This document shows positions 1 to 29,820 of a DNA stretch of 64,000 nt, piece by piece (the stretch's first letter is position 1; every line of letters starts with the position of its first letter). The translations under genes and the position numbers were made by a program. Under the pieces are notes generated by a model that was given only the letters and a program-made list of their open reading frames with translations, made no database searches and was not told the origin of the DNA. The DNA lies in contig OZ176051.1 in the NCBI GenBank assembly GCA_964247055.1, forward strand, positions 1,054,001-1,118,000, read 5' to 3'. This stretch comes from Paragordius varius (taxonomy: Eukaryota > Animalia > Nematomorpha).

Positions 1-1764
1 TGCCATATGAAGATTCTCGTATTTTAAATTTCAATTTACCATCCATATAATAAACATTCATTAACAATATAATTGGAAGCAAATAAAATATAAAAAATAC
101 GTGTTATTCCCTCACATCGTATTGTTGGACCCATGGGGCGATCTTTTTCTAAAATAAAAAAAATGTATATAATATTATTGATACCCCATTGCACAAATAA
201 AAGATTGATTTTTAATAAAATATATATATCATCATGTATGTCCTTTTGTATTAGGCAATAAAGTGACCACTTTTATGGTATTAACCTTATACGAAAATAT
301 AATTTATGAATAATTTACATTTTTAGGGGAAAATAAATTTTCCAAAATATATCATTTATGTCATAAACTATAACAAGAATTTTTTGATAAAAATTAAATG
401 TTTAGATTGGTCTCCCACAATAACCGAGACTGCGCTAAGAAATATTATTATATGTAAAATTGTATAAAAAAGATTATTTCTAAATAAAACTTTGCCCACA
501 ATTTGTATCATATGAGATTTATTATTGTAGTGATTATAAGGTAGTTAGACGTTTTTTAATAAATTCAAAATTTATTAATACAGAAGGTGGATTCATTATT
601 AAATGAATTTTAATGTGCGGAAAGTCTAGGAAATTACTGAATGCATGTTCTTATATTAAAATGAAAATGTAACATAACCTATATAATTCAATTATTTCCC
701 AGGATTTTTACACAATGTCTTTTCGATGATACTCTCAACGAATTTTGCGAATTTTTATCCGTGAACCTCGCTCTATATTTTGATTTTATTATACCAATAA
801 ATCAAAAATTGACATCTATAATAGTGAAACATGGTTGTCAATTTAAGCAAGTTTATGTGCAAACATATGAATATATAAAATATCTGGTGAAATGAATTAG
901 ATTTTGCTAAATGCTGTTAAACTTCATTTTTTGAAATACTATACTTTGGTAAGCCATATAAAAACACACGGCCGGCCAATTTTAGTATGTGAACCCTTGT
1001 TTGCCGACTCCTGATGTAAACTATTATATTGAGCCATCAACAAAAATAAGATTTAATTTTTATCCTCCATGTATTGTTAATATATACAGGTGTGTTGGTT
1101 CATAAAAAGCGAAATGTTAATTGCTTTGAAAAAATTATATTGGTGGACGCTGCAATAACATAAAAACCCTGTAATTTCAAACAGGTCAATGTCACTAAAT
1201 GAATGAGAACACAATAGACCCAAAAAATTAAAGCCTATAATAACAGGAACAAAAGGAGGCTATAAAAATGTTAAAAGCAAACATTATCCCTATTCTCAAC
1301 ATAAACTTATATCCCTAGTTTACAACTTACATTGTTGCATATTTCACTCAGCTATTTATCGAATTTCACTTCATTTCATTCCATACAATACGATTAAATA
1401 ATCATCTATTATTGATCTTTTAACAAAAGTAATTTTTTGATATTCTTGGTCATATCTTAGGCCATAAATTTCCGCCAACTTATATACAATTTTGATCTTA
1501 ACTACTTCGGGCGCACTGTTATATGATCTACTAATTTTTCAATATTTTTACCTCGCTTCTTGTTAGTTATTATGTCTAAAGGAAACCATTATGAGCTTAT
1601 TCTTTATGTTAATTAAGAGATGAATAGTATTTGACCGGTTTATTCTTAAAACTCTTATATTCATGAACCTTTAGGGCAGTGATGATCTATACCATTTATA
1701 TCTGTTTTTAATCATATATTCATGTTTTAACTCACCATTAATGTTTGGCTTTTATAAATTATGT

Positions 1765-2170
1765 TATATTTTAAATAAAATTAATATTTGTATAAGAATA
1801 ATAACTCGTTAATGGCGGGCTCCTTGTAATTTTTCGAGGAAATAATACGCAAATTACCTAAAGAATAAAAAAAATTGTAACATAATCTTTTCGTCCTTGT
1901 CGTGGATTTATCAGATCTTCGAAATTTCTGTTTTATAAGGCCTCTCCTTGATTACTATGAACCCTTATTCAATTGTAGACTAATGCAACGATCTCCATAT
2001 TTTGCTGTTATAAATAATTAGTCCCAAAGAATCTATCCAACATTGAATATATTTAATTTTTTTATTTTTTAGATGATTTGCGTATTATTCCCAGGAAGAA
2101 TTACAAAGAGCCGGCCATCGAGTTATTATTTTTATACAAATATTAATATTATTTACTATTATATAACAAA
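1765..2170. mobile_element. Palindromic MITE with ~100-bp arms
   Basis: ATAACTCGTTAATGGCGGGCTCCTTGTAATTTTTCGAGGAAATAATACGCAAAT mirrors ATTTGCGTATTATTCCCAGGAAGAATTACAAAGAGCCGGCCATCGAGTTAT. Confidence 0.75.
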
Positions 2171-2399
2171 ATTTATTAATGTCAAACATTAATTTTGAAA
2201 TTATATTTATATTCCCTTAAAAATAACATTAGTCTTTCTATTATCTGCCTATCTTATTTGATAATAACACCTGATATAGTAAAAAAACACAAATAGAAAA
2301 TAGATTTCAATAGATATTTATGAATTTATTTGGCCCATCATAATTTACTAAATTGGTGACGAATTTAGATTATGTTTACTCTGTCTATCACTAATATTT

Positions 2400-3010
2400 T
2401 TATAAAAAATTGGTAAATGATAGAAAATTATTTATGTTTAATATATAAAATTAACATTTGGATACAACACAGTCATTTTAGTCCTTCGATTGATATTGAG
2501 GTATTTAAATACAGGCCTGTTTAAAATTAAATTCTTTACAAAATATGGAACGATTCGAAACCATGGCAAAATTTTGCACTTTATAACATTAATAAACCGA
2601 ATATAAAAAAATTTATTCAAAAATACCTGATATTACTTAGTTTAAGCTAAAACCAAATAAAAATTTAGTCAGCGTGACATGTCTGCAATGGTAATTGAAA
2701 AATAATATAAAATAAACCGCTTTTTCTATTTCTATCCATGTTAGATGTAATTTAAATAAAAAATTAGCTTTAATTTTACCCTTAAAATTAAATGAAGACG
2801 ATATTTTGGAATTTTGTAAAATAAAAATGGCGTCGAAGTAGTTTGATGTGAAACTTTTTTTTAAAACCAAATTTTATTTAAATATGGTTTATTTATATAA
2901 TTTTTATTAGGATAGACGCATAAATTTAAATTGGGACCGTTTCTTTCAGTAGTTTTTTAAAAATCCTAACTTAAATTTTATTTGGATACCCCAATTTGAA
3001 TCTAAGTGTT
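2400..3010 (+). repeat. Dispersed AT-rich repeat family E (other copies at about 54420-55020 and 24920-25220, partial at 7420-7560)
   Basis: Shared blocks TTGGATACAACAC..TCATTTTAGTCCTTCGATT, ACCATGGCAAAA, AAAATGGCGTCGAA, GGATACCCCAATTTGAATC. Confidence 0.8.
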
Positions 3011-3869
3011 AATATAAAACTTATTTGTAAATTAATGTATTTATAATTTGATAAATATTGCACATTGCAAATTAGGCACGACGTAACACTTGGCTATCTA
3101 TTTTGCTCTTTTAAAAAAATAGTGCAGGCCTTTACTTAACACTGTTTAAAATTTGCAATTTGATTATACTGAAATAAATAATCATAATTAGCTCAAAAGT
3201 TTCGAAATTTTTTTTGATGTTTATCAACAACTATTTATAGCACAATTTTGCCCTCTGTGTTAAAATTGTGTTTGGATAATTAGATATAAACTTCTTATAC
3301 GCTACTCTATGTAACCTTTAACCTAAAACAAATGGGTTCGCGGGCCGTATTTGAAATATATATATGGACATTTAATATTTATACCTAAAACCGCAAATAT
3401 CAAACACAATATAATAATTTTTTCTAGTTCTTGCAAATTGAAAAGACTTATTAGGCAGTGTTGGACACCCCAGTTTAAATTATTTTGCATTGAGAAAAAA
3501 CATTTTGTTTTTCATTACCAATAATTTTTACACACCTTATGGTATTGTTAATTTTTAAATAATATTTACCTTTTTGGGCACCTCGTTTCGTTGAAGTTCG
3601 GTTGTATTAACAAAAATAGGGAATGGTAAAGGATTATTCTTGGTTAGCTGCGCCAAATGTGGCCCATGTAAGCATATACACAATCCCTAAAAAATAAAAT
3701 ATATATTAAAATCTTTCAGGGTTTTCAGGTACTTTTGGTTTTGGGCCTACAAGTGATATTATAAAGTTATTAAAATTTTGTGGTAAGAGATCTATATAAT
3801 AAATGGCGAATTCTGAGCGCATTTTTGTAATAAATTTTTTTGGTGAAAGCTAAATGCAGTCCAAATATC

Positions 3870-4460
3870 ATCGAAATGTATAAAAAGCCAAATGTTTTTA
3901 AAAAACTTTAATAATTAGATGTGGGCTCCAAGAGTGGCAAAATTTTGTTCTCTAAAATAGGCTAGTTTTCTGAAAATAAACGCGAAAATGCCGATATTGC
4001 GCAATAAAAAGGTAAAATATAAACTAAATTTTGTCAACTATAAATATCTATAAAATGCATATGTTTTTATAAAATTTTTAGCAAAATTTGGTTGAAGCGT
4101 ATTTCATACTTTTGAGGCAAAACGGTTTCAGAACGGAATATTTTAACCTTTATTGAAGTAATAGTGTTCATCATCATCAAATTATGTGGAAAAAGTTTTT
4201 TCTTAAAGCGTTTTATACCGTTTCCAGTAAGCCTCAAACTAGTATAAAGTAGGCTTCAACAAAATAAATTTGAAAGTTTACATTTTTTAAAATCAACTGA
4301 GTTGATATCAAAATTTAGCAAAAAAAACATTTAGCGCGCAATCCCCGCATTTTTGCATTTATATTAAAATGACCAGCACTTATTTGAGGAGCGAAGGAAC
4401 TTTCGGAGCCCACATCAAAAATTAATATTTTTAAAAATAATTTTTTGCTTTTGTAATAAA
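3870..4460. repeat. Old degenerate palindromic element
   Basis: GATGTGGGCTCC (about 3918) mirrors GGAGCCCACATC (about 4405), with patchy similarity on both sides. Confidence 0.55.
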
Positions 4461-4554
4461 AATTTACCCAAAAAAACTTTTAATACAGTAGTATTACTTC
4501 TCTGAGTAGTCTATTCCAATCGAAATCTCGGACAATAAGGACAACCCAAATGAA

Positions 4555-4890
4555 GTGAATTAAAAAGAAGTATTTAATACCACCTGAGTTTCTGATAATG
4601 CATGTTGTGGATCTAATAAGAAATGTTAATTTTAAATTATAATGTTTACATTGACGTTTGTATTTTTTGTCCACGATTATATTTTGGGTTAGATTTTGAC
4701 CCCAGAGCTTACAATAAAATTAAATTATTTAACCCTCTAATAATAAATTAAATTTTTTACAGCTTCTTAAGTTATAGAGTCAGAAATTCAGATAGCAAAC
4801 AGCTATATTATGATCTAAATTAATATTTATTTTTAGATCCACCTAATGAACTATCGGAAAGTCTAGGTGATATTAAATACTCTTTGTATA
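4555..4890. repeat. Degenerate palindromic MITE
   Basis: 4560-4640 is the reverse complement of 4820-4890 (TAGATCCAC....AGGTG.TATTAAATAC). Confidence 0.6.
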
Positions 4891-7800
4891 GTTAGAAAAT
4901 TATATAAATAATAAAATGATTACTTCATTTTTCGTTATCGAAATTTTTAGGGCAAAAATATAGTATTTATGAAAATTAAATCATAGATTTTTGATCAAGC
5001 ATTATAAAATTTTGTTTGGAATTAACTATGAACCAATAAATTTTAAAACTATTAGCATATATTTTTGCATATAAATACTAAAAATAGCTTTGATAAATAC
5101 CAATTTTAAATCAAATAAATATTTAAGTAATCTACATTGATCGCAATTTTTAACATGATTCTACCAAAATTAAATTCTTGTCAATTGTTTCGAAAAATCA
5201 AAAAAATTGTATAAAATCGCTCCAAATATGAAAAATAATTATCAATATAGATGAGTTTGGGTTTCGTTTTTCTTTTAAAGAATAAGAAGTTGTATTATAT
5301 CAGAAAAAAATGATAATTTGTATTTTATCAGAACTTTGAAAGCCTGACACTCGCTTGGCAAGGGCTGTCATCGACACATTATATTATCTCAAAAATATAA
5401 AATTTATTATTTTCATCATTAAAATATGAAAAAATATATTTTTACAAAATAAACCCGAAAATTGCATATATTCCTGCTTTTAGTACTCATATCAAATATG
5501 TTAACATTAAAAACTAATTTGATACAAATCGTAGATTAAATTATTAATGTAGGAAAACACCTATGTTACCTTTTCGATAAAACAAAATTATTATATGATA
5601 AACAGTTAAAAATAAATTCAAACAAAAAGATAGGAATTTTGGACTAAAGTATTAGCATCTAAGTTATCAAAAAATATATATAAAAATTAAAAATAATGTA
5701 CTGAATATAAATGTCAATAACTGCATATGCCAAATTTTAATTACATTCATTGTAAAATCAAATGTTTTTTTTAAACTAATTTACAAAAAAATAATCAATT
5801 TTACAAAAAAGAACAAAAAATGCAAAGTACAACTACTGTTTAATTAATATAAACATCAAGATTAATTTTACTAGAATAAAAAAGCTTTGAGCAGATATAA
5901 AAAACCAAAATGATCCAAATATTATTATCATCCTTAAAATGGCGCAAAAATTATGTAAGGAGGTAGACTAAAATCTATGGTTATTCAAATGAATTTGCTC
6001 TTTTCTGTGTACTTTAAAATAATAATATTGGCCGGTTTCTTTCATTTTTTTACCATTAGGCTACAATAATATGAGTAATTATATAGCTATTATAAAAAAA
6101 TCTATATTCTGATTTTCAAGACGATTTTTAGTAATCAGTGTATAATTTTCATCAACACTTTTAATATAACATATTTATATTTATTACATTCAATTGGACA
6201 AACCTATGGATTTTTTCACTTATAAAATGAATTGATATAAGCTTATCTCAGGACTAAATTTATTTTTTTTATTTTAATTATAATAAATAACTTCTTTTGG
6301 CAAATATGTCTTTTGTATTATTATCATATATTAAAACCATTGACTTATTACAATGCTTATACCATATTTTAATTAATTATTTATTTTCCTTAGGCACTTA
6401 CCATTTATCCGTTTAATAACAAAGAATTAAACATTAAAATTTAATTATGAAAGTGACATTCATTAGCTTAATTTCAAATAATGTATTGAAGAGAATTGAT
6501 TAATATTTCAAAATTTAATAGAGGCGTTTATTTAAAGGTTTATTCTGAAAATATTTTCAAAAACATTTTGCATTATAATGAATCGCTATGGGTAGAACAC
6601 AAATAGAAGCGATGTAGCCTTCATTTATAAAGGAAAGATTTTAAGAAGTCTTGTTTGGTTGGAGGATATATTGAATATCATGTTAAATTGATAAAAATGG
6701 CATGTGCATTTTATAGTCACTTAAGGATTACTAAATATGATATGATGATGTGTTAAAAGATACCTAAATCATTAAAACAAATTGGAGATCGCAAAAACGT
6801 TTCTTAATATATATTTACAAAATTATAAATTTCTAGCCAATAAAACTAATCCTAATATATATCTATTTTATAATCATTTACTAAAATCCATCTCAAAAAG
6901 GATTTGATAGTTATAAGAATATTTGATTTAAGAGTTCCAAAATTACAAATGACTATGTAACAGAATACGAACAATAATTTAATAATTTTTTAAACGTTTT
7001 ATACATAATAATACAAATTCAAATATATGATAGTATATAATGAGATAAATATACACTAACATAATTGTTTACTAAAGTTGATAAAGTTAAAAACAAAAAC
7101 AATATTTAAACGCTTGGATACAACCACATTCATTTCGGTCCTTTGATTCGAATTGCGTCCTGGTGACACTAGGCCTTATAAAAGCATAATGTAACCTAAA
7201 ACCGTTACGAAAATTCGCACTTATATAAGATTGATAAACCGAAATATAAAATCAGAATTATTTTAAAATTTATATTGTTTTATAAAAAAATCTGGAAAAA
7301 TTTAACCAAAATGACATATGTGCCATACCGTAATAAAAAAATAATAAAAAAATCATGTCTTAGAGGTGAATTTGATAAATTAGCTTTATTTTTAGCGTTA
7401 GAATTAAAAATATATTAAAAATACTGTGAAATAAAAATGGGAAGTTTGAGGAGCTTTTTTTAAAACTAAATTTTTATTTTAAATTATTTATTTAATATTT
7501 ACAATAAATTTAAATTAAAACCGCTTCTTTCAGTAGGATTTTTTTAAAAAAATCAATTTAATTAGGCCGGTCACTAGTTACCACAATTCGAATCAAAGTT
7601 TTAAGACTGTCTGTGCTGGTGATGGAGCCATCTTATTATTAAATGACGGTTTCTCTTGAAATATTTTCTAATTAGGCGTTTTTGCAAATGAATGATATGA
7701 CAGGTAGATAAAATATTTATAAATAAGTTTTTTCGTTTGAACACTTTAAAACCATCGTCAAGCATCCTTGTTAGTACATAATAACATAGCAATACTCCTT

Positions 7801-8369
7801 AGACTTAATATTCTTTGCCCCAAAACTACATCGTCAATTAAAATAGCATTGTAACCAAAATATTTTTTTTAAAAAAAATCTTGTAAATAACAGTTATAAA
7901 GTATAGCCATATTTTTGAGTTTTTGCAAAATCGCTTATCAAACTAAGAAATATGGTTTTATTTATAAAGTTACCAAAGTCAAGTTCATTAAATTATTTTT
8001 GTAAAAATTGTTTAATATAAATTAAAGGTTTGACAACTAGAGATGAAAAAACCAAAAGAACTATTTATATATAAGTTAAAACATTGGCCTTTAGATAAAG
8101 CTAATTAATTAATCACCATTTAAATTATCAGGTGAAATCCATTTAAGAATATATAAATATATATTGATTTTACGAATAGCAATCGAAAATTATATAAATA
8201 TTACACAGGTGTTTGGGCAGTCATCATTAATACATTCAAAATTTTAATTCAACACCTTATCTGTAAAAAATGCAAAGACAGTGGCAAATTATGGAAATAA
8301 TTTAGCAAGTTTAAATTAACGATAGAGAGATGTCATTTAATGGAATTAACATATTTGATATATTATAAG

Positions 8370-8870
8370 ACAACCAATATAAAAATGAAGTTTTATAAAT
8401 TATGCTTGCAATAAAAATATTACTAAAAATTAAAGGATTTATTACCAAATTGGTCCAAGAATTCGATAAAAGAAATTAGTGTAGAAATTTAATAAATGTT
8501 ACAATTGTTTTTAAAAATTAGAAATTAAAAACAACTATTCAAAGGTAAAAATAATATAAAGCGATAAAAAAAATTCATGTTCAAAATTAGTCACGTAAAC
8601 AATGGCGTGTTTTTTATAAACCAAACTAATTTGCATGTTACGAAAATGTACGGCTTTAAAATAAAGAGAATTGAAAAAAGTTCTTAGTAATTTACATGTC
8701 CGTTTTATATATGATTTATTGGAGGTCAACAATATTTATATAAAAAACGATTCAATTACATTTATAATACATTAATATGTTTGAAATTTATTAATTAACT
8801 ATTTATTTTATCAACAATAATAAATAAATTATAAAAATAGATTTTTTTAGTATCAGACTTTAATTTTTAT
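8370..8870 (+). repeat. Dispersed repeat family F (second copy at about 55060-55620)
   Basis: Shared TAGTCACGTAAA..AT.GCGTGTT..TTATAAACCAAACTAATTTGCATGTTA.GAAAAT.TACGG block and flanks. Confidence 0.75.
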
Positions 8871-9024
8871 ACAAAGCTTTTTTATGTATAGTTAACTTTA
8901 TTGAATAGCTTTTATAATTACATTCATTCAAGCATTTCAATGAAATTCTGATCGATTTTGAAACCATTGCCATATATTATTAAAAAGGTTGGAATCAAAT
9001 GATACTCGTAGGCTTTAATGACTT

Positions 9025-9357
9025 ATAACAGTTGTTAAAATCCGTAAGATAACGATAAAAGAATATTAAATAGGATTAAATGAAGTATAAATAGAAATTA
9101 TAAACGATATCTGAAACCCTTCGTCATTAGTAATCGCAGACTACTTTCGTGCTTGTTAGCACTCATCAGTACGACACAACTATTTGACTTGGGGTTTTCA
9201 CATATCGATTTCGTCTATGTATCCAACTTTGCAATTTTGGTATAAATGCAGTTTGTTATACGAAAGGGTTTCACACGTTTATAATTTCTATTTATACTTC
9301 ATTTAATTCTATTTAATTTTCCTTTAACGTTATCTTACGGATTTTAACAACTGTTAT
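9025..9357. mobile_element. Inverted-repeat element (~100-bp arms) enclosing the hammerhead; possible Penelope-like pLTR remnant
   Basis: Arms 9025-9124 and 9260-9357 are near-perfect reverse complements (ATAACAGTTGTTAAAATCCGTAAGATAACG... / ...CGTTATCTTACGGATTTTAACAACTGTTAT). Confidence 0.75.
9121..9174 (-). ncRNA. Type I hammerhead ribozyme motif (stem I slightly degenerate)
   Basis: Minus strand: UCGUA CUGAUGA GUGCU-AACA-AGCAC GAAA GUAGUC-UGC-GAUUAC U A / AUGACGA. Both core boxes are perfect, stem II is 5 bp, stem III is 6 bp with one G-U, the cleavage triplet is CUA, and the predicted cut lies between 9128 and 9127. Confidence 0.8.
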
Positions 9358-10129
9358 TACAAAACATAACCAATCCGTTATTTACCATTTAAAGACTTAT
9401 GTTTGAACAAAATTTTTTACGATAATTAGGACGTGTATTCCATGTGTTTAGAACTTTAAGCAATAGGACTGATAGGCAAAGACCTTATTGTAAACCATCA
9501 AAATGCATCATAACTTTAAAGGTTATAACACTATAAACATTCTCCATCAAATAACAATATCCCACATAATTCCTTTGACGAGGGTAGAACACAAAATTGA
9601 TAAAATCCCATACAATGTTGGGCAAAATTTTTACGATCAGTCTTCTTCTTACAATTGACGTCTTTGCAAATCACTACTTTAGTTTTTCTTTTGACAATAT
9701 ATAAATATATATATATAAATTACAAATTTAGTTATTAAACGTTGAATTTAAAATAGCAATTTTAAGTTAAGAGTCAAACATTACTTTAAATTTACTTTGA
9801 AATTTTATTCCTATATTTTTTTTCCCTTTCAAGTTTCATATAATACTAGAAAGGCATAAAATTAAATCGAATCTCCATTTATTGCGTCGTCCAATCACTA
9901 CCACCGATAAATAAATCATAATCTCATAATCACGGTTAAAAATTTCTGTTTATTTTGTTCTGTAGTTTGTTCAGAAGATATCTAATTTAGATATAGTTCA
10001 TTAGTTTTTAATTATTAAGATATCTTTTAAGTTATTACTTAGTTTGTATTGGTTCCATACGCCACAAGTATGGTGAATAAAATCCCGGCAAACTAGTTCA
10101 TAAAAATATAGAAAATTTAAATGAAAAAT

Positions 10130-13059
10130 ACGTATAGCAGGGTTGAAAGGAAGAAAAAAGATCTAATAGTAAAGAACAATGCAAAGAATCCATTAGATAT
10201 TTTGGGTATCAGTGAAACCCATTACAAGGGCAATGGTTTTTACATAATAAAAAAATTGTAATTATATGTCGGGACAATGAAACAAAGGGGAGGGAGTTGG
10301 TGTAAATAATGGATATAAATATGTCAATTCGTTTATACAATTTTAGAATCATGATCATTAGATTTAATGCTAGTCTGGTTAACTATCAATGTGTATGCCC
10401 CTACAGCGGACTCCGAACAAGAAAAAATAGATTTATGAACAGCTCCAAGACTTAATAAACTTTGTACCTAAAAAGAAAATGATTATAATGGGTGGTAAGA
10501 GTACGACACGATAGTGGAAAAACACGGATTAGGCGAAAGGAACGAATCTGGTTAAAGATTGATCGAATTCTGCATGATTAATAAAATGTTTGTTGTTAAA
10601 CCATGTTATTAAACATAAAACGGCTTTACTCCTGGACCTCCCCTTTAGCATTTATGAAAAACTTTTTCCATTTTTGTTGTGCCAAAAAATAATCCATTTG
10701 GTGTTTAATTTAAAGTTGTGACTGCTCAAGATTTGAATTATTATAATAACACAGATACCCGATGGAATAACAGTAAAACAATAATCCCCGAACAGCACAA
10801 AAATATCTACCAAAGAAAAAACATCATTAAAAAGGGTTATCAGATGACTTATTAAAATAATTGAATAAAGAAAAAGAGCTAAAAATAGAGGGGATATATA
10901 CCATTTGCACTTCAAGAGTGTCCTTGAAAAAATCAAGTTGGTCCTTGAACAGTTCTCCTTGAACACTTCAAATTGGTCCTTGAACATTTCAAGTTGGTCC
11001 TTGAACATTTCAAGTTGGTCCTTTGACCTTTTTGTTTTGTTTTTAACTTTTATCAATCAAATCGTAAATAATTCATCTATTTTATTTTTTTTAACCTATT
11101 TTCTATTATTTAACATAAATTTTAGATCGCTATCAACTTTTAATCTTTGAGAAACCGTATATTCTTATTAATTTCTTAAATAATTTTGGATATTTATAAG
11201 ATTTTAACACGAAATGAAAAAATATATAAGTTTTCTGGGTTATTAATTAAAATTTTTCATTAAAAACATTAAAAAGTCAATAATTTTGTTCAATTGAAAA
11301 AAAATAGTTTAAAACAAAAAAGTGGTTTTTCAATCAAAATTTTTATTTTTTGAATAAATATATAATAAATAAAGAAAATTAGGTAAGGACTAACTTGAAG
11401 TGTAAGACAACTTGAACTGTTCAAGGAACAACTTAAATTGTTCAAGGACCAACTTGAGATGTTCAAGGACCAACTTGAAGTGTTCAAGGACACTCTTGAA
11501 GTGCAAATGGTGTAGTTAGGTTATAAAAATTAACAAGATTCAGAGACAGAAATGGAATGACCTGTGAATGGAATAATAAACAATACATAATTATTGAGGA
11601 AGAGAAACTTAAGTAAACCTTTGTTCCAAATCATCAGAATAACAAATCAATACCAACTCCTTAACATTTAAGGATGATAAAGCAAAAACCTTAACGACGA
11701 AAATAAATTAAACAAAGATTGGAAAGTTACATCTAACAGTTATGTAGTGCGCACCCAGGTGCAAATGATAGACTAATATATGGGAATGGATGATGAGTTA
11801 TGTTAATGAAAGGAAATACCAATAAAGAAAGCTCTGCAATAATATTCTTTTGGATTAAACAAGAGATATACCGATATCAGTTATACATAGATTGTGCCAG
11901 GAAGTATGAAAGTCAGGTATTGGCAGTCTTTAAAAAAAACTGAAAAGACGAGAACTATAAAAACATAGATATCATTATATATGAAAGCAAATTATTGAAA
12001 ATTATCCAGAACAGATTACACCGAGGGATAGTCAGGGAGATTCCAGATGTTCAAACATTTATGGAGCATAGCACAAGAGATCCCATCCCTGACTGAGACG
12101 TATAATTGAAACATTTATAGAATATCAGGTGGAGTTTATATGTTGCATTGAATAGATCTAGGCTTTTGACTCGATTAACCATGTACATATATGGCAAAGT
12201 TTGGAAGCTATGGGTTATAGCAAAGCTTATCTTGCAAAATTTGTATGAACAGCAAAAATAACAAAAACCCCGGTGGGAAAATTTCAATACAGAGAGGTGT
12301 TAGACAAGAATTTTGCCTCTCACCATACTTAACATTTGTACAGAAATGATCATGAGAAAAGTAGATCATGTTAATAAAAGCTTAAAGATAGGACGGAAAA
12401 AGATTAACAATCTATTTGCAGATGACCCGACGCTGTCGCAGTGATAATGTAGAAAGTTTAAATAATATGATAAGGTTAGTAAGAGAAGAAAGCAAAAATG
12501 TATAACCTCAATCCTAAGAAAACCAAAATTATTAGTTTAGAAAATAAAGCTGATATAACCATAGACGACACCCCAGTAGAAGTAGTAAATAAAATCCTGT
12601 TCTTAGGCCCAATATCAAGGGCTTCCTTACGCCAGAGACTAAACTCAGCATAGCATTAGGGAAGTCAGATGTACAAGCTGACTAAATTATGGAAAAATAA
12701 AGATATTACTATGAAAACTAAGCGAGTGTAATGAAATGCAGTTGGACACTAAAACTCAATGATAAAAAAGGACAGCATTCGTAATGTGGTGTTTGAGTGT
12801 AAAATATAAAGAAAGTTTACGTTTGGGCACATTTTAAGAAGTGTATCCCTTGAGAAGGATTTGATTTTGGGGAAAGTTGAAGAAAAAAGGATAAAAGGAA
12901 GACCGATGTTAAGTTGACTGGACACTGTAAAAAAGGTATCTGATAGATGTATAATTGAAGGAAATAGCATGATGAAGAGACAAGTGGAGAGAACTGGTCA
13001 TTTTATTTTCAAGGGTTCGAACTTGACCTAAGGAATTAACTACCTGACTACCTACCTAA
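10130..13059 (+). mobile_element. Decayed RTE-clade non-LTR retrotransposon (APE + RT), interrupted by a MITE
   Basis: Frameshifted motifs in order: LDILGISETH, NVYAPTADSE, EKHGLGERNESG, RLYSWTSP, AFDSINH, RGVRQxxCLSP, INNLxFADD, GRP. The 3' end has a short (CTAC)n-like tail at about 13040-13059. Confidence 0.9.
10899..11512. mobile_element. MITE A: TIR element with 21-bp subterminal repeats (GAACATTTCAAGTTGGTCCTT)
   Basis: Ends TACCATTTGCACTTCAAGAGTGTCC / GGACACTCTTGAAGTGCAAATGGTG; TA on both flanks (10897-98, 11513-14); inserted into RTE coding sequence. Confidence 0.9.
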
Positions 13060-13079
13060 TTCAACATAGCGCTCGAGAA

Positions 13080-13780
13080 TAGGGGTTTCATATGCATAAA
13101 ATTCTCACTCTCTGAATTCGGTTCGTTATTTCCTCAGACATTCCGTCCCTACTCTCAACACAGGATACGGGTAACTATTTTCAGGGTAATGCTAGATAGC
13201 TCCTACACTTAGATCTTTGACGTTAAAATAATAACGTCATACTTCAAAAGTGTACTATCGAGTTTTCAGGAGCCCCATTCAGTTCATCATGAGAGTTTCC
13301 AAGAGAACTATATTATTATAGGCAAGATGTCATACATCCTATTTTACCTTGCTTCGGAATCCTGTCAAGATTTAACTCTCGAGGTTTGGTTTGAAAACCT
13401 TTAAAAATACTGGAAACATTCGCTACTCTTAGACACTATTCCAAAGAAATGTTGAATAGAGTAGGTTACACCCTGCGCCCTTACCTGACACCGCGTTCGA
13501 AATTAAATTAGATTGAGGCATCTCCTCTAGACTTGACTCTCGCCTTGATGGCCAAAATCTGCCTCACCATAGCCGAAAACCGTGAAAAATCCGCATTGAA
13601 CTAAGAATTATAGATGTGGCGCGCAATCAAAGCTTTTCTTAATCGAGAAAGACGGCATGTAGCTTTATCCGTCACTCTATCTTCTTAAGTCCTACACGTC
13701 AGTATATGAGGTCGATTGATGCTCTCTGAGCCCATATTAAGTCAAAGACTTTAATCTTTGTCGATAATATTTTAGTAAAG
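13080..13780 (-). mobile_element. RT-domain fragment of a second RTE family, related to the element at 18430-22150
   Basis: Clear nucleotide similarity to about 19400-20000 (e.g. GTTAAAATAATAACGTCA, GTGTACTATCGAGTT, CCGCATTGAACTA). Confidence 0.75.
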
Positions 13781-14514
13781 GATTTTCCGTTTTTTACATA
13801 AACAAAAAAGTTATAGTTGACGCGTTTTCTTCAAATGTATTTATTTTATTGACCTAAAATGCGATAAAATGAAATTTTTTGTATATTTAACCGCAATTTT
13901 TTATTCGAACTTTTAGTTATAGAGTGAAATGCTCGCAAAAATTTTAATTTTGAGATTCGCATAAGTTTATATTGAAATTCCATGGATAGAGTTGATTTAT
14001 GGATGTTATTGTTTAAAAAATAAATTAATCCACACAATTATAATAGTTTATAAATAAATTAAATTTAATAAATCAATATATTCAAGATAATTATTTTATA
14101 ACATAAATATAAATAATTTATTATTTAAATGATTTTGCTGCAAATAAATAGTTTTTAAGAATCCTTCTATTAAGTAAAATCGACTTATTAATTTTTTGTT
14201 TTTTTTGAACATTTCGAGAGCCATAAATATGAATACACATCATTAAAATATTTAAATTTAATTTTGGGTTTTATTGTCTTTTTAGGCTATAATTAAAATA
14301 CTTTGAAAATTTATAATGGTTTTCACTATATTAATAGGTAATTAATAATGGGGTTCGAGTACAATTTTAATCATTATTATTCGTTTTACATCAGTACAAG
14401 CAAAAATTTGTTTATTTCTTTTTAAATATTTTTAATCATTTCTGAATACCAGCTTTCCTTTCCACACATCAGACATGTATTAGTACTCACTTTAATAGCC
14501 ATTTAACAAGCGTA

Positions 14515-17500
14515 TATGTCTAATTTATTATGCAAATTAATTTGATTAACAAAAACAAGACGCTTATTTAGGGACTAAATCTCAAACAATTATTTATTCT
14601 TCGTTAGTTTTCTCCATATTTGAACTAATTTCTGATATTTAGTAGAATTAAATCATTTATTAGATTTTAAAACCTAATCCCGTTTATCCTATTCTTTGCA
14701 GACATTTAAACTTAATTAAATATCTTATTAAGCTAAATGTTAAGCTAATGGGTTTGCCAGTTAATACAGTCACGTATAATATTTGAGTTTTAACAAAACT
14801 GTTTTTGAGATATTATCTTCCTTTCACAATAAGAATTCTCTATTGTTTGCCAGGATGATTAGAACAAATGATCTTTATTAACATATACTGTAAATAAAAT
14901 TTAATATATTTCCCCTACCCGCAAAGGGGGACTAAAATTTTTATTATAAGAAATAAAAAAGGCCCGTGTTTTGCCTTGGGGACCCAGAGCACTGCTCCCC
15001 CCTAGCTCCTGTTCGTTTTGCCACTGTATTTAAATTACATACCGAAATCACTAACAATGCTTCACGTTAATAAACCAAAACTAATTGGGGAACGAGAAAA
15101 AAATTTAACAAATATCAAAATTGTATGCTCAAAATTTGGAGTGTTTTGTTTTATCAAAGGCCTATTTAGTTTAAATAACATATCAAAAATAATCAGCTTG
15201 ATCAACTAACTGTACTTTGAAATTAATTAAACAAATTGGATTTATAACTTATGGAGTTTTCTTAAGAATGATTTATAAAATTCAGATAATTACAACATCA
15301 TCGTGCATAATATTTTTTTATAACTATCGTCATATCACTAACTTTGTATTTATATGAATGTTACTATTATATTATTTATTAATTGCTAAATTATACTCTT
15401 TTATGCTTGTAGGACATTCAAATATTATCCCAATGGGAGTTTATAATGCTTATTTACTCGATTATTGGATATTATAAAGATATTTTCAAGATTTATTATG
15501 ACAATATTTTTATTGGCTTAAAATGGCTTTCCATCAAGCACTTAAATCAAAAGAATGAAAAAAATATTTTTATATTTTTTAATCTTTTTAGCTAAGGGCT
15601 CATAGAGAGCTATTTCGTACGGGCCAAGATATTTAAAAAACAAACCTTTTTATTTTTATTATCTCAACATTATGTATAATTACGATTAATTACACTAGAC
15701 AAGAAATTTTTTGCCAGAATTTTTTGCATGTTCTGATTCATTTTAACAGAATCTGATATAAGAATTAAAACCTGAATTTAATTTTTATCAATTTTATTTA
15801 TAAATGTGTTGCCTTAAATATGCAACAGATGCCCATTCGTAGTATATCATTCGAAAGAGTAATAAAAACTCTATAAAATGCACACTAATATTTACATCGT
15901 TAGTTAATATTTGACATTAGAAGCGACAAACTCGCGCACTCTTAATTAATATATTTTTAAAACTAATGGATGAAATAGGTCAAACTTTGTATAGATGGCA
16001 ATGAATGTCTTTAAAAGATAACACAAGCTTGTTATTTTGAATAAACTCATTTTATCACATAAGTGAACAAAGATATTCAGTGAAAATGAGATATTTATTC
16101 AAAATTATTTAATAACTAAAAACTTATACAGTAGCATATGCAGTAACAGATTGTTAGTGCGCAATAATCTAAAAAACACAAAACAGGGGGTTATCATGGA
16201 TAGTGTATACAAAATCAGGGGACAATCTTGGTATATGTAAAAATGCGCATTTGGGTTTGTAAAATTGCGATGAAAAATTGTAAAAATATTAGTGAAACAT
16301 TATTTCCCAGATTTCTTATAAAAAAATGTTAATTTTTCATTTAATGGTAGAACATTCCGTGATTTGAATTATGGAACTGTATATAAATACAATTAGAAAT
16401 TATACAAGATCCTTATTTAAATTATTACTTGCTTTTCTCGATCTATTTAAAACTGAATAAGCGTGAGGTGAAAATTTAAAATATTTTTAAAATTTGGGGC
16501 TTTTTGTTAAAAATCAATCACACAAGTTTACTTCTTAAATGCATTACTTATATTATATTTTATTAACCTCTAAACATTATTAACTGCTATAGATTTCTTA
16601 ATTTTTTTGTTGTTTTACAACATATTATCTTCAAGTAACGTTATCTAAATTGGATATATCCTGTAATACATTTCTAGAAGTTTGTTGAATATTTGGTATT
16701 GTGGCTTCCTTTTCCTATGAGTATTCATAAACATTTAATAAATTTTCAATAAAAAACATCATAAACATTTATCACAAAAATTTTATTAGTTTTTCAATAC
16801 CAAATGTGCCGACCAATTGTTCTCAATTTTCATATTTTGATTATCATTCAGTCCTATTTATAAACATATCCATAATATCCCCCTATTTTGTGTTTTTTAG
16901 AATATTTTGCACTAACAATCTTTTGCTGCATACGCTACTGTATTAAATTATTTTAACTCCACCCAAGTCAATGAATGAACTATCTAAAAATATAATCAAA
17001 ATTATTATTAAAATTTAAACACCTTTTAAATTAAAACTTTCCAAATATTTCTTATCTATTAAATTCTCTATACCGGGTTTATTATATAGTTACACTAACT
17101 AAATTTTGAAATCAAAAATTTTAGGTTACTGGATTAAACGACAAGTATTTAGCAATAAACAATTATAATTGCAAAAAAAGTTTTATTGAATAAAATTTAT
17201 GTGATTTTTTAAAAAAAATTTATATACAAAAAATGCCAGGAGTAAAGATTAATGGTTTCTAGCCCACAACAAGTTGAAGCCGCAAATCATGAAATGCAAT
17301 TAACGACGATAGGCATACCAACAAAAGATAGCAACAAAATACAGCACCGATAATAACCACACTTATATCCATATATCCATAACAACAACGAAATTTCCCT
17401 GATCGCTTTACTATGGGGGAATATGATGTTATCATTTATTTACATTGTATTATAATACAAATAAGTGCGAATTTTTTATTTAAAAATATATAAATATACC

Positions 17501-20196
17501 TGTGAAAGTTAGAAAAATTTAACTCAATAAATAATAAATTTTATACATTATTCATATCATGTGCCTAATAATTTAATCGTGAAAGCTGCTCTCATTGCAA
17601 AAATATCGCTAAAATAAATCAGTTAATTTTAGCATATTGTATGTTAGCTCCAAAAAAGTCTTAATTATGACCATCCATTGTAAATCTGTTTTAATATTAA
17701 ATGCCGCAATCGAAAATTATCATTAAATCGTATGGTATGATTGAGGGGTCATTTGTAAACTATTCCGTAGCCCCTACACAGGATACTAGCGTTATTAAGA
17801 CTTGCCATATTCTTTTAGGGGTATGTGTCCACTACATCTTAAGACGCACTCTTCCCTTCTTGCCTTTCACATTTTAATCATTTTTTACCGATAAAAAATG
17901 ATCTCTACTCTTGATGAGTCCAAACCATCTGAGACGATTTAGTATCATTTATTGTTTATATGTTTTATTTCAGTAGATACTCTATTATCCTAATTCTTCA
18001 CTTTGCTCTTTATCATACCACACATTACCCTAACTATTTCCTGCTTTTCTACTGTATAGCCCATTTTAATATCATTGTTGGCTATACAACTGCATTATCG
18101 GCCTTACACTTAACTTTTATGTTAAGATTTATGTCCCATATAACATTTGAGATCTTAGATAATTTTCACAAGTTTAATTTTTTACATTATCATCACTGCT
18201 GCTAAAATTCCAAAATATTTTGACTCCACATTCTTTTTTATACAACCTTTTTAATCGTATCTGTAGTTTTTCTTACCAAATTTTGTCGTTTTTCCTTTTT
18301 AACTTTTAAATCACTCAATGTAATGCATTAATCCTTTGATTCCATAATGATTCAAGCACGTCTGACGGAACTATTAGGTCATTTGCATAAAGAAAATAAC
18401 ACACTGTTAATTCTTGAATTCTCAAATGCGCCCCATAAATATTAACGAATGCTGACTCCAGATACGCTGAGGTCTTCAATAATTACGGATATGCCGCAAA
18501 TGCATTTTATGTATTTTTGTAACGGTCAGGCACATTTTTTGTCTTAAACTCTATGGTACTTTGCGGTAACTTTTGAAAGAGTTTCACTATCAGCAAACGG
18601 TGTCCACCATCTCACCTAAGCAGGAAATAGGCGTTATGATGTATGACAACACAAAAATATACCGCAAGCATACTCATCCCTCCACTTTAGGTCCGAATAA
18701 GCCCGTTTTTAAATATTTTTTGTATTTGTGATTTTTTTGTTTTTTCCATATACACCCTGAATATGTGCAAGCAATTGCTCCTCCAACCCTGCTTTTTGAC
18801 CATAATAGGAATCAATACCAAGTTTTTTCTTCGGTCTCAACATGGCACTTTTATTCGAGATTTACCTTTTAACACGTTTGCCAAATCTGTAAGACAACTG
18901 CAACTTTTTCCCATAATCTTAAGTAAACCATTCGATCCAAAGTTGCCAATTAATTAAGAAAGATCAATTCGTATGAATTTTTCCCTCCTTTGTGTTGCGA
19001 TTGATTCGATCCTCCCGCACCGATAAAACTTAACACATGAATCTAGCAATGTCGGATAAGTGACCTTGATGCAATCTACAAAGCCACCGTAGTCTTATAT
19101 AGCAAATCATCTAGTTTGCGTCTGTTACTTAGTCTATACACAGTTACATTATCGTATTTAGAGATGTTCTCAAAGCTTCTAATGCCGGAGTTAATAAAGC
19201 TGTCTAGTTTCGAGACATCCTGTAGGTTAGTTTATCACCATCTGTACAGAGTTACAAGAAACATAATAAGATGCTTTTTAAAGAGCAATTCTGCAGCACG
19301 CGCAAGAAGAAATTTCATATTCTCGCTAATTGTAATCGGTTGGTTATTTCCTTAGACATCCCCCTACCCCAGCTGTTTAACCCCAAGAAAAGCTCTATAC
19401 ATCCTCGATCATCGATCTTCTCAATACAATCGGCGGGTAACTACGTCCGGAGTGATACCTGATAGCTACACTTGGGTTTTTGAGGTTAAAATAATAACGT
19501 CAGACATCCGGAGTGTACTATCGAGTTCCACTCAATTCCGTTCATCACGAGAGGGTCACAGGAAAACTATATCCACAAAGACAAGTAATGTCCGCACCCT
19601 ATCTTGCTTCGAAGTCAAGCCACTGAGAGTTGAATCTAGAGGTTGTTTCGAATGCTTTCCGAAATATTGGAAATAATCGCTTCTCTTAGATGCCCTTTTC
19701 AGAAATCTTCAAAGAGTAGGTGACCCCTGCACCCTTGCCACAGCATTCCAAGTTAACCCAGTCCTCGCTATTTGACTTGACCCTAGCCTTGTTTCCTAAC
19801 CCCAAGCCGCGCCCGTTAGCCAAATACTTTTAGGTACATCCGCATTGAACTAGGAATTTGAGTGTTTGATGTGGCTTACACTCAAAGCTCCATCTAAATA
19901 GGGAAAGACGGCATGGGTAGCTTTCTCCATATAGATTTTATTCATCTCATCATATGTAATTGTGGTCCTAAGATTTCACAACCCACACGCGTATCGGTCA
20001 TGACTCCAAAGTTTCTAAAACGAGCATCAACCACCCGTTTAAGATTTTTCCCCCAACATTAAATAAAGAGGCGGTATGATTTAGGGTCTTCCTGCTTACT
20101 TTTAGGTTTATATATTGCAGATATCCAGAGCCTTCGTTCTTCGGGTACTACGCCCGACGTCCAAACTACCTTAAAATTCCTTCCAATGGCTTAACA
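14515..20196 (+). repeat. Left arm of a giant inverted repeat (~5.7 kb)
   Basis: Collinear reverse-complement match to 25545-29820 continued by 46134-47460 (also 37952-43555 in the redundant contig). Confidence 0.9.
17745..18340 (-). mobile_element. 3' fragment of a third RTE family (mirror copy at about 27400-27990, plus strand)
   Basis: Remnants KYFG, NRLRWFGLIKSRD, KGKKGR resemble the RTE C-terminal RLRWFGHV..R..GxRxRGRP region. Confidence 0.75.
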
Positions 20197-25544: not shown

Positions 25545-27320
25545 GCTGTTAAGCATTTGGAAGGAATGTTAAGGTAGTTTGGACGTCGGGCGTAGTACCC
25601 GAAGAACGAAGGCTCTGGATATCTGCAATATATAAACCTAAAAGTAAGCAGGAAGACCCTAAATCATACCGCCTCTTTATTTAATGTTGGCGGAAAAATC
25701 TTAAACGGGTGGTTGATGCTCGTTTTAGAAACTTTGGAGTCATGTCCGATACGCGTGTGGGTTGTGAAATCTTAGGACCACAATCCACCTGATACATATG
25801 ATGAGATGAATAAAATCTATATGGATAAGTTACACATGCCGTCTTTCCCTATTTAGATGGAGCTTTGGCTGTAAGCCACATCAAACACTCTTAAAATTCA
25901 TAGTTCAATGCGAATGTACCCAAAAGTATTTGGCTAACGGACGCGGCTTGGGGTTAGGCAACAAGGCTAGGGTCAAGTCAAATAGCGAGGACTGGGTTAA
26001 CTTGGAATGCTGTGGCAAGGGTGCAGGGGTCACCTACTCTTTAACATTTTCTGAAAAGGGCATTTAAGAGAAGCGATTATTTCCATTATTTCGGAAAGCA
26101 TTCGAAACAACCTCTAGAGTCAATTCTCAGTGGCTTGATTTCGAAGCAAAATAGGGTTGCGGACATTACTTGTCTTTGTGGATATAGTTTTCCTGTGACA
26201 CTCTCGTGATGAACGGAATCGAGTGGAACTTGATAGTACACTCCGGATGTTTGACGTTTTTATTTTAACCTAAAAAACCCAAGTGTAACTATCAGGTATC
26301 ACTCCGGACGTAGTTACCCGCTGATTGTATTGAGAAGATCGATGATCGAGGATGTACACAGCTTTTTATATTTGGGGTTAAACAGCTGGGGTAGGGGGAT
26401 GTCTAAGGTAATAACCAACCGATTACAATTAGCGAGAATATGAAATTTCTTCTTGCGCGTGCTGCGGAATTGCATCTTTAAAAAGCATCTTATTATGTTC
26501 CTTGTAACTCTGTACAGATGGTGATAAACTAACCTACAGGATGTCTCGATACTAGACAGCTTTATTAACTCCGGCATTAGAAGCTTTGAGAACATCTCTA
26601 AATACGATAATGTAACTGTGTATAGACTAAGTAACAGACGCAAACTAGATGATTTGCTATATAAGACTACGGTGGCTTTGTAGATTGCATCAAGGTCACT
26701 CATCCGACATTGCTAGATTCATGTGTTAAGTTTCATCGGTGCGGGAGGATCGAATCAATCGCAACACAAAGGAGGGAAAAATTCATACGAATTGATCTTT
26801 CTTAATTAATTGGCAACTTTGGATCGGATGGTTTACTTAGGATTATGGGAAAAAGTTGCAGTTGTCTTACAGATTTGGCAAACGTGTTAAAAGGTAAATC
26901 TCGAATAAAAGTGCCATGTTGAGACCGAAGAAAAAATTTGGTATTGATTCCTATTATGGTCAAAAAGCAGGGTTGGAGGAGCAATTGCTTGCACATATTC
27001 AGGGTATATATGGAAAAAACAAAAAAATCAAAAATACAATAAATATGTAAAAACGGGCTTATTCGGACCTAAAGTGGAGGGATGAGTATGATTGCGGTAT
27101 ATTTTTGTGTTGTCATACATCATAACGCCTATTTCAAGCTTAGATAAGATGGTGGACACCGTTTGCCGATAGTGAAACTCTTTCAAAAGTTACCGCAAAG
27201 CTGACCATTACAAAATTAGCATAAAATGCATGTGCGGCATATCCGTAATTATTGAAGACCTCAGCGTATCTGGAGTCAGCATTCGTTAATATTTATGGGG
27301 CGATTTTGAGAATTCAAGAA
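25545..27320 (+). mobile_element. Inverted, 5'-truncated copy of the same RTE/RTEX-like element (inner part of the right IR arm)
   Basis: Reverse complement of about 18430-20196, sharing most of its lesions. Confidence 0.85.
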
Positions 27321-29820
27321 TTAACAGTGTGTTATTTTCTTTATGCAAATGACCTAATAGTTCTGTCAGACGTGCTTGAATCATTATGGAATCAAAGGAT
27401 TAATGCTTTATATTATGTGGTTTAAAAGTTAAAAAGGAAAAACGACAAAATTTGGTAAGAAAAACTACAGATACGATTAAAAAGGTTGTATAAAAAAGAA
27501 TGTGGAGTCAAAATATTTTGGAATTTTAGCAGCAGTGATGATAATGTAAAAAATTAAACTTGTGAAAATTATCTAAGATCTCAAATGTTATATGGGACAT
27601 AAATCTTAACATAAAAGTTAAGTGTAAGGCCGATAATGCAGTTGTATAGCCAACAATGATATTAAAATGGGCTATACAGTAGAAAAGCTGGAAATAGTTA
27701 GGGTAATGTGTGGTATGATAAAGAGCAAAGTGAAGAATTAGGATTATAGAGAATCTACTGAAATAAAACATATAAACAATAAATGATACTAAATCGTCTC
27801 AGATGGTTTGGACTCATCAAGAGTAGAGATCATTTTTTATCGGTAAAAAATGATTAAAATGTGAAAGGCAAGAAGGGAAGAGTGCGTCTTAAGATGTAGT
27901 GGACACATACCCCTAAAAGAATATGGCAAGTCTTAATAACGCTAGTATCCTGTGTAGGGGCTACGGAATAGTTTACAAATGACCCCTCAATCATACCATA
28001 CGATTTAATGATAATTTTCGATTGCGGCATTTAATATTAAAACAGATTTACAATGGATGGTCATAATTAAGACTTTTTTGGAGCTAACATACAATATGCT
28101 AAAATTAACTGATTTATTTTAGCGATATTTTTGCAATGAGAGCAGCTTTCACGATTAAATTATTAGGCACATGATATGAATAATGTATAAAATTTATTAT
28201 TTATTGAGTTAAATTTTTCTAACTTTCACAGGTATATTTATATATTTTTAAATAAAAAATTCGCACTTATTTGTATTATAATACAATGTAAATAAATGAT
28301 AACATCATATTCCCCCATAGTAAAGCGATCAGGGAAATTTCGTTGTTGTTATGGATATATGGATATAAGTGTGGTTATTATCGGTGCTGTATTTTGTTGC
28401 TATCTTTTGTTGGTATGCCTATCGTCGTTAATTGCATTTCATGATTTGCGGCTTCAACTTGTTGTGGGCTAGAAACCATTAATCTTTACTCCTGGCATTT
28501 TTTGTATATAAATTTTTTTTAAAAAATCACATAAATTTTATTCAATAAAACTTTTTTTGCAATTATAATTGTTTATTGCTAAATACTTGTCGTTTAATCC
28601 GGTAACCTAAAATTTTTGATTTCAAAATTTAGTTAGTGTAACTAAAACCCGGTATTGAGAATTTAATACATAAGAAATATTTGGAAAGTTTTAATTTAAA
28701 AGGTGTTAATAATCTCACGATGTAAATTTTAATAATAATTTTGATTATATTTTTAGATAGTTCATTCATTAACTTGGGTGGAGTTAAAATATTTTAATAC
28801 AGTAGCGTATGCAGCAAAAGATTGTTAGTGCAAAATATTCTAAAAAACACAAAATAGGGGGATATTATGGATATGTTTATAAATAAGACTGAATGATAAT
28901 CAAAATATAAAAATTGAGAACATTTGGTCGGCACATTTGGTATTGAAAAACTAATAAAATTTTTGTGATAAATATTTATGATGTTTTTTTTTGAAAATTT
29001 ATTAAATGTTTATGAATACTCATAGGAAAATGAAGCCACAATACCAAATATTCAACAAACTTCTAGAAATGTATTGCAGGATATATCCAATTTAGATAAC
29101 GTTACTTGAAGATAAGATGTTGTAAAACTACAAAAAAAATTAAGAAATCTATAGCAGTTAATAATGTTTAGAGGTTAATAAAAAATAATATAAGTAATGC
29201 ATTTAAGAAGTAAACTTGTTTGATTTATTTCTAACCCAAATTTTAAAAATATTTTAAATTTTCACCTCACGCTTATTCAGTTTTAAATAGATCGAGAAAA
29301 GCAAGTAATAATTTAAATAAGGATCTTGTATAATTTCTAATTGTATTTATATACAGTTCCATAATTCAAATCACGGAATGTTCTACCATTAAATGAAAAA
29401 TTAACATTTTTTTATAAGAAATCTGGGAAATAATGTTTCACTAATATTTTTACAATTTTTCATCGCAATTTTACAAACCCAAATGCGCATTTTTACATAT
29501 ACCAAGATTGTCCCCTGATTTTGTATACACTATCCATGATAACCCCCTGTTTTGTGTTTTTTAGATTATTGCGCACTAACAATCTGTTACTGCATATGCT
29601 ACTGTATAAGTTTTTAGTTATTAAATAATTTTGAATAAATATCTCATTTTCACTGAATATCTTTGTTCACTTATGTGATAAAATGAGTTTATTCAAAAAA
29701 ACATGCTTCTGTCATCTTTTTAAGACATTCATTGCCATCTATACAAAGTTTGACCTATTTCATCCATTAGTTTTAAAATATATTAATTAAGAAAAAAGCT
29801 CTGCTAACGATGTAAATATT
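25545..29820 (-). repeat. Right arm of the giant inverted repeat (continues at 46134-47460 after the gaps)
   Basis: Mirror ORFs (17960+/27526-, 18763+/26802-) and continuous reverse-complement similarity to the left arm. Confidence 0.9.

Follow-up and report, generated by a model that had tools for sequence, protein, structure and literature searches.

A hammerhead ribozyme between inverted arms in Paragordius varius most probably marks an ancient insertion of a non-autonomous Penelope-type retroelement

The window analysed here is a stretch of 64,000 nt from contig OZ176051.1 of Paragordius varius (assembly GCA_964247055.1, positions 1,054,001 to 1,118,000) with a GC content of ~25%, and positions 9025-9387 of it are occupied by a single insertion flanked by a target site duplication (TSD) of 11-13 bp. 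The left copy of the TSD (TTTAATGACTT, 9014-9024) matches the right copy (TTTAAAGACTT, 9388-9398) with one mismatch, the two combining to TTTAA[T/A]GACTT, and the 2 nt that follow the left copy can be assigned either to the target or to the element. The insertion is composed of two 5'-truncated copies of a repeat unit, termed family A, joined head-to-head. The longer copy (9025-9264, minus strand, unit positions 236-476) contains a hammerhead motif, has no tail and shows 93% identity to the reference copy L019:1266-1800. Its 3' end is at period position 22, in the "short" one of two 3'-end classes described below. The shorter copy is inverted relative to it (9264-9387, plus strand, unit ~379-508), ends in the "long" class and is the only one of the two to have the ~30-nt extension termed the tail (9358-9387), which is delimited by the two 3'-end peaks at period positions 19-24 and 55-60. 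The copies meet at 9260-9265, where 5 nt (ACGAA) form a microhomology common to both. The window copy is shorter than one unit and has no partial tandem.

The inverted repeat arises from the unit segment ~379-476, which is found in both copies. The left arm (9025-9121) corresponds to the ~97 nt at the 3' end of the minus-strand copy and the right arm (9264-9357) is the same segment in the plus-strand copy. The initial annotation had described an inverted repeat of ~100 bp, and this is borne out, as the arms are 95% complementary over 82 nt without gaps (9025-9106 against 9276-9357) and 92% complementary over ~97 nt (9025-9121 and 9264-9357) when gaps are admitted. What appears as the loop between them is the stretch (unit 236-378) by which the longer copy reaches further 5'.

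The same internal junction is present in three genomic copies, the window copy and the loci L002 (contig C1) and L003 (contig C4). Both L002 and L003 have the TSD of the window copy with the identical mismatch, together with more than 3 kb of its flanks; these loci are therefore not independent transpositions. Window positions 351-15477 are collinear with C1:1835280-1848744 and C4:12886971-12895112 at 87-96% identity (by segment, 351-10309 corresponds to the C1 interval and 7444-15477 to the C4 interval). The copies thus lie inside a segmental duplication of more than 10 kb, and the insertion is therefore older than the duplication. Elsewhere in the window, positions 14514-20000 recur in inverted orientation at ~25743-29792 and ~38150-43555, and two dispersed repeats without a hammerhead motif are located at 2450-3016 (a family of ~570 bp) and 16125-16945 (~820 bp, with 77-nt terminal inverted repeats (TIRs) of 88% complementarity).

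Family A is abundant in the genome (110.6 Mb in 44 contigs). The 333-nt stretch 9025-9357 has many relatives, most of which match just 240 nt of the query, corresponding to its centre and one arm. A 25-nt core from the hammerhead occurs at least 268 times genome-wide at ≤3 mismatches and the reversed control occurs 0 times, so that both the minus-strand hammerhead core read in the initial annotation and its expectation of further copies with a conserved core are upheld. Contigs of runs labelled as several organisms also contain the element as DNA; none of the runs containing the stretch is recorded as RNA, and two small runs presumed to be RNA gave no match at contig level. The unit has a period of ~454 nt and no open reading frame (ORF), the only frame found by direct reading being one of 22 codons starting at the AUG inside CUGAUGA. 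The reference copy at L019 has 58-nt direct repeats at both ends, L007 and L018 extend to 1.8 and 1.65 units, respectively, and the longest copy reaches ~806 nt. All three loci show the partial tandem, or pseudo-LTR (pLTR), organisation. At C4:11695921-11697052 three tandem cores spaced by ~445 nt are accompanied by one inverted core, which makes this array a candidate source of the family.

The architecture of the insertions was defined by mapping 65 independent family A loci onto a trimer of the unit. The orientation of the copies is strongly asymmetric, with 38 loci arranged head-to-head (-+), 0 tail-to-tail (+-), 24 solo and 1 in direct orientation (++). Two copies abut in 36 pairs with a median gap of 0 and often overlap by a few nucleotides. 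The junction position ranges from unit 53 to 442 among the loci, with the arm length differing at each locus, and the 5' ends of the copies are scattered across the whole unit, indicating variable 5' truncation. The 3' ends are bimodal, a peak at period positions 19-24 being separated by ~36 nt from another at 55-60, and 27 of the 36 abutting pairs combine one 3' end of the short class with one of the long class. Direct repeats (TSDs) of roughly 10-20 bp border the pairs as a whole, that of the window included. An inverted 5'-truncated copy, a tail at one end and a TSD of variable length are features of Penelope-like element (PLE) insertions. The suggestion in the initial annotation that the locus is the remnant of a Penelope-type retroelement with an inverted arm accordingly stands, on the evidence of the TSD, the head-to-head junctions, the two 3'-end classes, the partial tandems and the PLE-type hammerhead.

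Most family A copies run through the predicted cleavage site of the ribozyme, and 5' ends are not enriched there (3 observed compared with 2.6 expected), so that the genomic copies bear no trace of cleavage in vivo. As copies cross the site and some exceed one unit, the templates would be uncleaved multimers or religated circles. The first reverse transcriptase (RT) start site lies, by fold prediction, inside a stem-loop at L019:1720-1777 (unit ~455-512) formed by a stem ACGGAUU ... AAUCCGU with an inner GUUAU/AUAAC stem, which resembles one that the anole PLE has at its own RT start site.

The hammerhead motif of the window copy (9133-9175, minus strand) is of the PLE-type minimal type I and is identified by direct reading, by covariance model and by comparison within the family; no second CUGANGA-hairpin-GAA motif was found on either strand of the 64-kb window. 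Reading along the minus strand, stem I is formed by 6 bp (9175-9170 with 9138-9133) and is followed by CUGAUGA (9169-9163), the 5-bp stem II GUGCU/AGCAC with the loop AACA (9162-9149), GAA (9148-9146) and the hexamer of helix III (9145-9140). C17 is at 9139, placing the predicted cleavage between 9139 and 9138 (between unit positions 361 and 362). The inverted window copy starts 15-19 nt 3' of this GUC site and 4-8 nt 3' of the alternative CUA site considered below. All elements of the conserved core are read directly, namely C3-U-G-A-N-G-A9, G12-A-A14, A15.1-U16.1 and H17, with the triplet GUC. The family consensus is fully canonical in the GUC register, with a 6-bp stem I (GUCGUA/UGCGAU) that includes two G-U pairs, a stem II (GUGCU/AGCAC) with G10.1-C11.1 and a helix III formed by the palindrome ACUAGU. 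Read in this way, the family A ribozyme is best described as a minimal type I hammerhead with a palindromic helix III and putative cleavage after GUC.

The window copy departs from this design by a private C15.2-to-G substitution at 9144, which changes the hexamer to AGUAGU, breaks the helix III palindrome and creates a 7-bp hairpin (9145-9139/9135-9129). G at 9144 occurs in just 2 of 85 copies (the window copy and L010), and 71 of the 85 read ACUAGU. The paralogue L002 has the consensus C at this position; the G therefore most likely arose after the duplication. All 43 nucleotides of the ribozyme are intact in 40 of the 85 copies.

A second ORF-less hammerhead family is represented by the loci L031-L060 (for example L034:1501-1544). 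Its layout is that of family A, and its helices differ (GUGUG[G/A]/UCACAC, GUCC/GGAC and ACGCGU); with ACGCGU as helix III and GUC as the triplet it conforms to the classic minimal design of PLE hammerheads. Copies of this family also occur in inverted pairs, 300-580 bp apart. In a joint alignment of the two families 99% of the cells pair and five pairs are changed on both sides, as compared with 12-53% pairing in slid controls, and the sole unpaired cell is the G-G mismatch at 15.2/16.2 of the window copy. Covariation in the stems, proposed as a check in the initial annotation, is thereby observed, as a single comparison covering two families only. The hammerhead is furthermore the least diverged segment of the unit, with 1.3% divergence per site compared with 3.4% in the flanks (Fisher p=1.6e-6) among copies picked by overall similarity and not by the core, and the low divergence stretches past the ribozyme over unit positions ~281-400. 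Folding of the isolated 43-mers with RNAfold/cofold gave no hammerhead dimer, even for the classic second family, and this result is therefore not used as evidence.

The covariance-model search suggested by the initial annotation returned no Rfam family at the gathering score across the whole window. The best match in E-value mode is to Hammerhead_HH9 (RF02275), with 21.5 bits for the window copy (E=0.009 in a 601-nt search) and 26.7 bits for L019, both below the gathering score of 52. The model aligns L019 and the window copy in the GUC register, with GUCGUA/UGCGAU as stem I and ACU/AGU as helix III. The second family gave 56 matches to Hammerhead_1 (RF00163) of 32-33 bits, up to 33.2, compared with a gathering score of 34. 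As the genome-wide search with this model scored 73 of 8881 candidates, the absence of family A from its list is uninformative. Family A has the core, helix order and canonical register of both Rfam models, but the two genome families score below the gathering thresholds and neither is annotated automatically, which means that routine Rfam annotation misses these ribozymes.

Three other readings of the locus can be set against that of a PLE-type insertion with a GUC ribozyme. The inverted arms could be the TIRs of a MITE or foldback DNA transposon, acting as a transposase substrate with a hammerhead carried by chance in the centre. The second proposal of the initial annotation, a non-autonomous family combining foldback arms with a self-cleaving RNA, is of this kind. 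The window copy does have arms of ~97 nt at its ends and three genomic copies have the same internal structure, but those three are paralogues within one segmental duplication of more than 10 kb with a common TSD and flanks. Across the genome the arms are not fixed TIRs, as their length varies from locus to locus with junctions between unit 53 and 442, the two ends are not equivalent since one has a tail of ~36 nt, the TSDs are long and variable, and solo and tandem copies occur. True TIR families in the window, such as that at 10894-11514, hold constant ends in all copies. With neither fixed TIRs nor a constant short TSD, an identity as a MITE or foldback element is rejected, and this origin is considered extremely improbable. 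The repeat at 10894-11514 itself is a genuine foldback-type MITE family of more than 40 copies with constant ends, in which TIRs of ~130 nt are made of ~24-nt subrepeats (TTCAAGGACCAACTTGAAGTG-like). The ribozyme could also be read as the initial annotation had it, as a monomeric type I hammerhead with a stem III of 6-7 bp (9145-9139/9135-9129) and cleavage after CUA (between 9128 and 9127, unit 372 and 373), and the minimum-free-energy fold of the window copy with short flanks is indeed this structure (-14.2 kcal/mol). It depends, however, on the G at 9144 that is present in only 2 of 85 copies. In the family consensus the CUA register has a C-C mismatch beside the A15.1-U16.1 pair, and it requires an additional A, left unpaired, between C3 and stem I. 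The covariance model picks the GUC register whether given the window copy or L019, and the second family has no equivalent of the hairpin. The CUA structure is therefore not the design of the family and is very unlikely to be the functional register. A side possibility, limited to the window copy, is that the C-to-G change turned a dimer-dependent hammerhead into a monomeric one with the cleavage site shifted by 11 nt.

The remaining alternative accepts a PLE-type insertion but takes the hammerhead as a functionless relic of an ancestral PLE pLTR, the element having spread without self-cleavage. It agrees with the one PLE studied in vitro, where hammerhead mutants left insertion unaffected and RNA-seq showed no reads with an end at the cleavage site (PMC11167929), and with the family A copies that cross the site and show no enrichment of 5' ends at it. 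Against this, no other segment of the unit has diverged as little as the hammerhead, a common architecture is preserved in two unrelated ORF-less families through compensatory changes in the stems, and 40 of 85 copies retain all 43 nt. A functionless ribozyme is accordingly regarded as rather unlikely. The reading preferred here, held with high confidence, is that window 9025-9387 records a single ancient insertion, made by a non-autonomous retroelement that carries a hammerhead and is of the non-LTR retrozyme or PLE-derivative kind. The window copy itself is, judged from its sequence, a dead relic that is 5'-truncated, ~7% diverged, has a broken helix III palindrome and was later duplicated (>10 kb).

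[quoted passage not shown] The surrounding interval C1:4912929-4918783 (loci L102 and L103) appears to be an intact PLE placed head-to-head with a 5'-truncated inverted copy. Autonomous PLE copies occur in head-to-head pairs with two end sites ~35 nt apart, which lie at the ATG or just before it. In the parts read of the loci of the one autonomous PLE examined, including its pLTR of ~205 nt, cmscan detected no hammerhead. Comparison of family A with this PLE gave no blastn or tblastn match in a consistent orientation, only weak AT-rich noise, and family A has no homology to the pLTR or 3' end of this one PLE family. The initial annotation had proposed looking for copies next to an ORF encoding RT and GIY-YIG, and none of 100 listed family A cores (of at least 268) is within 5 kb of any of 20 GIY-YIG matches. 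Weak GIY-YIG matches with in-frame stops at C7:7794, C28:8476, C3:14411901 and C4:14188756 are less than ~10 kb from contig ends and may represent a subtelomeric PLE-like family.

Since the intact PLE has no similarity to family A, the assignment of a mobilising enzyme is inferred. Both hammerhead families are ORF-less and the PLE has neither a hammerhead nor a sequence in common with them, so that if it is the mobiliser it must recognise RNA structure. The PLE nevertheless shows the same signature of two start sites and head-to-head copies. A candidate for the structure recognised is the predicted stem-loop around the first RT start site (unit ~455-495). That the PLE selects its passengers by RNA structure, or that the ribozyme elements are semi-independent circular-RNA parasites of an unrelated RT, is a doubtful proposition at present, with little probability attached to it.

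The signature of family A can be compared with published descriptions of PLEs. PLE insertions characteristically have an inverted 5'-truncated copy beside the main copy, partial tandems known as pseudo-LTRs and a tail of 30-40 bp that in many cases only one end carries (Craig et al. 2021, PMC8557442). In vitro work attributes this tail to a pair of neighbouring internal RT starts, in a reaction that cuts and extends each strand of the target (Frangieh et al. 2024, PMC11167929). Family A has in common with these insertions (PMC8557442, PMC11167929) the inverted truncated copy, the tail at one end, the variable TSDs, the AT-rich targets and the hammerhead, but it has no RT/GIY-YIG ORF and the whole unit is only ~454 nt. 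The two 3'-end classes of family A follow its ribozyme at a distance of ~115-150 nt. For the anole element PAc, subtraction of the published positions (cut at +26, RT starts at +111-118; PMC11167929) puts the RT starts ~85-92 nt downstream of the hammerhead cut, and the anole PLE hammerhead was protein-assisted (PMC11167929).

Metazoan PLE hammerheads have a minimal or short palindromic helix III, are expected to act as dimers and show little activity in vitro (Cervera & de la Pena 2014, PMC4209133). The family A ribozyme is similar to these minimal hammerheads (PMC4209133) in its 6-bp stem I, G10.1-C11.1, short palindromic helix III and GUC triplet. It differs in a 5-bp stem II closed by a 4-nt loop and, as far as its sequence suggests, in having no obvious loop-loop tertiary contacts.

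Animal retrozymes have been proposed to be non-autonomous derivatives of PLEs (PMC7229834; bioRxiv 10.64898/2026.07.22.740005). The animal non-LTR retrozymes (Cervera & de la Pena 2020, PMC7229834; Li et al. 2026, 10.64898/2026.07.22.740005) are, like family A, small, ORF-less and AT-rich elements of a few hundred nucleotides, and both have a type I hammerhead, tandem or partial-tandem copies, TSDs of more than 4 bp and PLEs in the same genome. Published work on retrozymes stresses tandem arrays and abundant circular RNAs, whereas family A is found mostly as dispersed head-to-head truncated pairs. A further difference is that family A has no homology to the one resident PLE family examined. 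By its insertion signature family A would belong with the animal non-LTR retrozymes, or non-autonomous PLE derivatives.

The role of the ribozyme would be to cut multimeric transcripts down to unit-length RNA. For insertion, a PLE protein with RT and GIY-YIG domains, provided in trans, would nick both strands of the target, as inferred from the published PLE mechanism, and each strand would then be extended by target-primed reverse transcription from either of the two internal sites of the element RNA. The two cDNAs would halt at arbitrary points and join at a microhomology. From the copies that exceed one unit (to ~806 nt) it follows that the template RNA was multimeric or circular. The arm length, which differs at each locus, is set by the truncation points of the two cDNA copies.

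As the window locus is truncated, mutated and later duplicated, nothing functional is expected of it. The kind of element is already known, and the finding is real but ordinary. Its meaning is that an apparent MITE looped around a ribozyme is what Penelope-type reverse transcription normally leaves behind when it acts on a small non-coding RNA. With at least 268 cores, a ratio of 38 to 0 for head-to-head over tail-to-tail pairs and a single tail in 27 of 36 pairs, the Paragordius varius genome provides a natural data set for the PLE mechanism, and its pattern accords with the pair of internal RT start sites that in vitro work revealed in the anole PLE.
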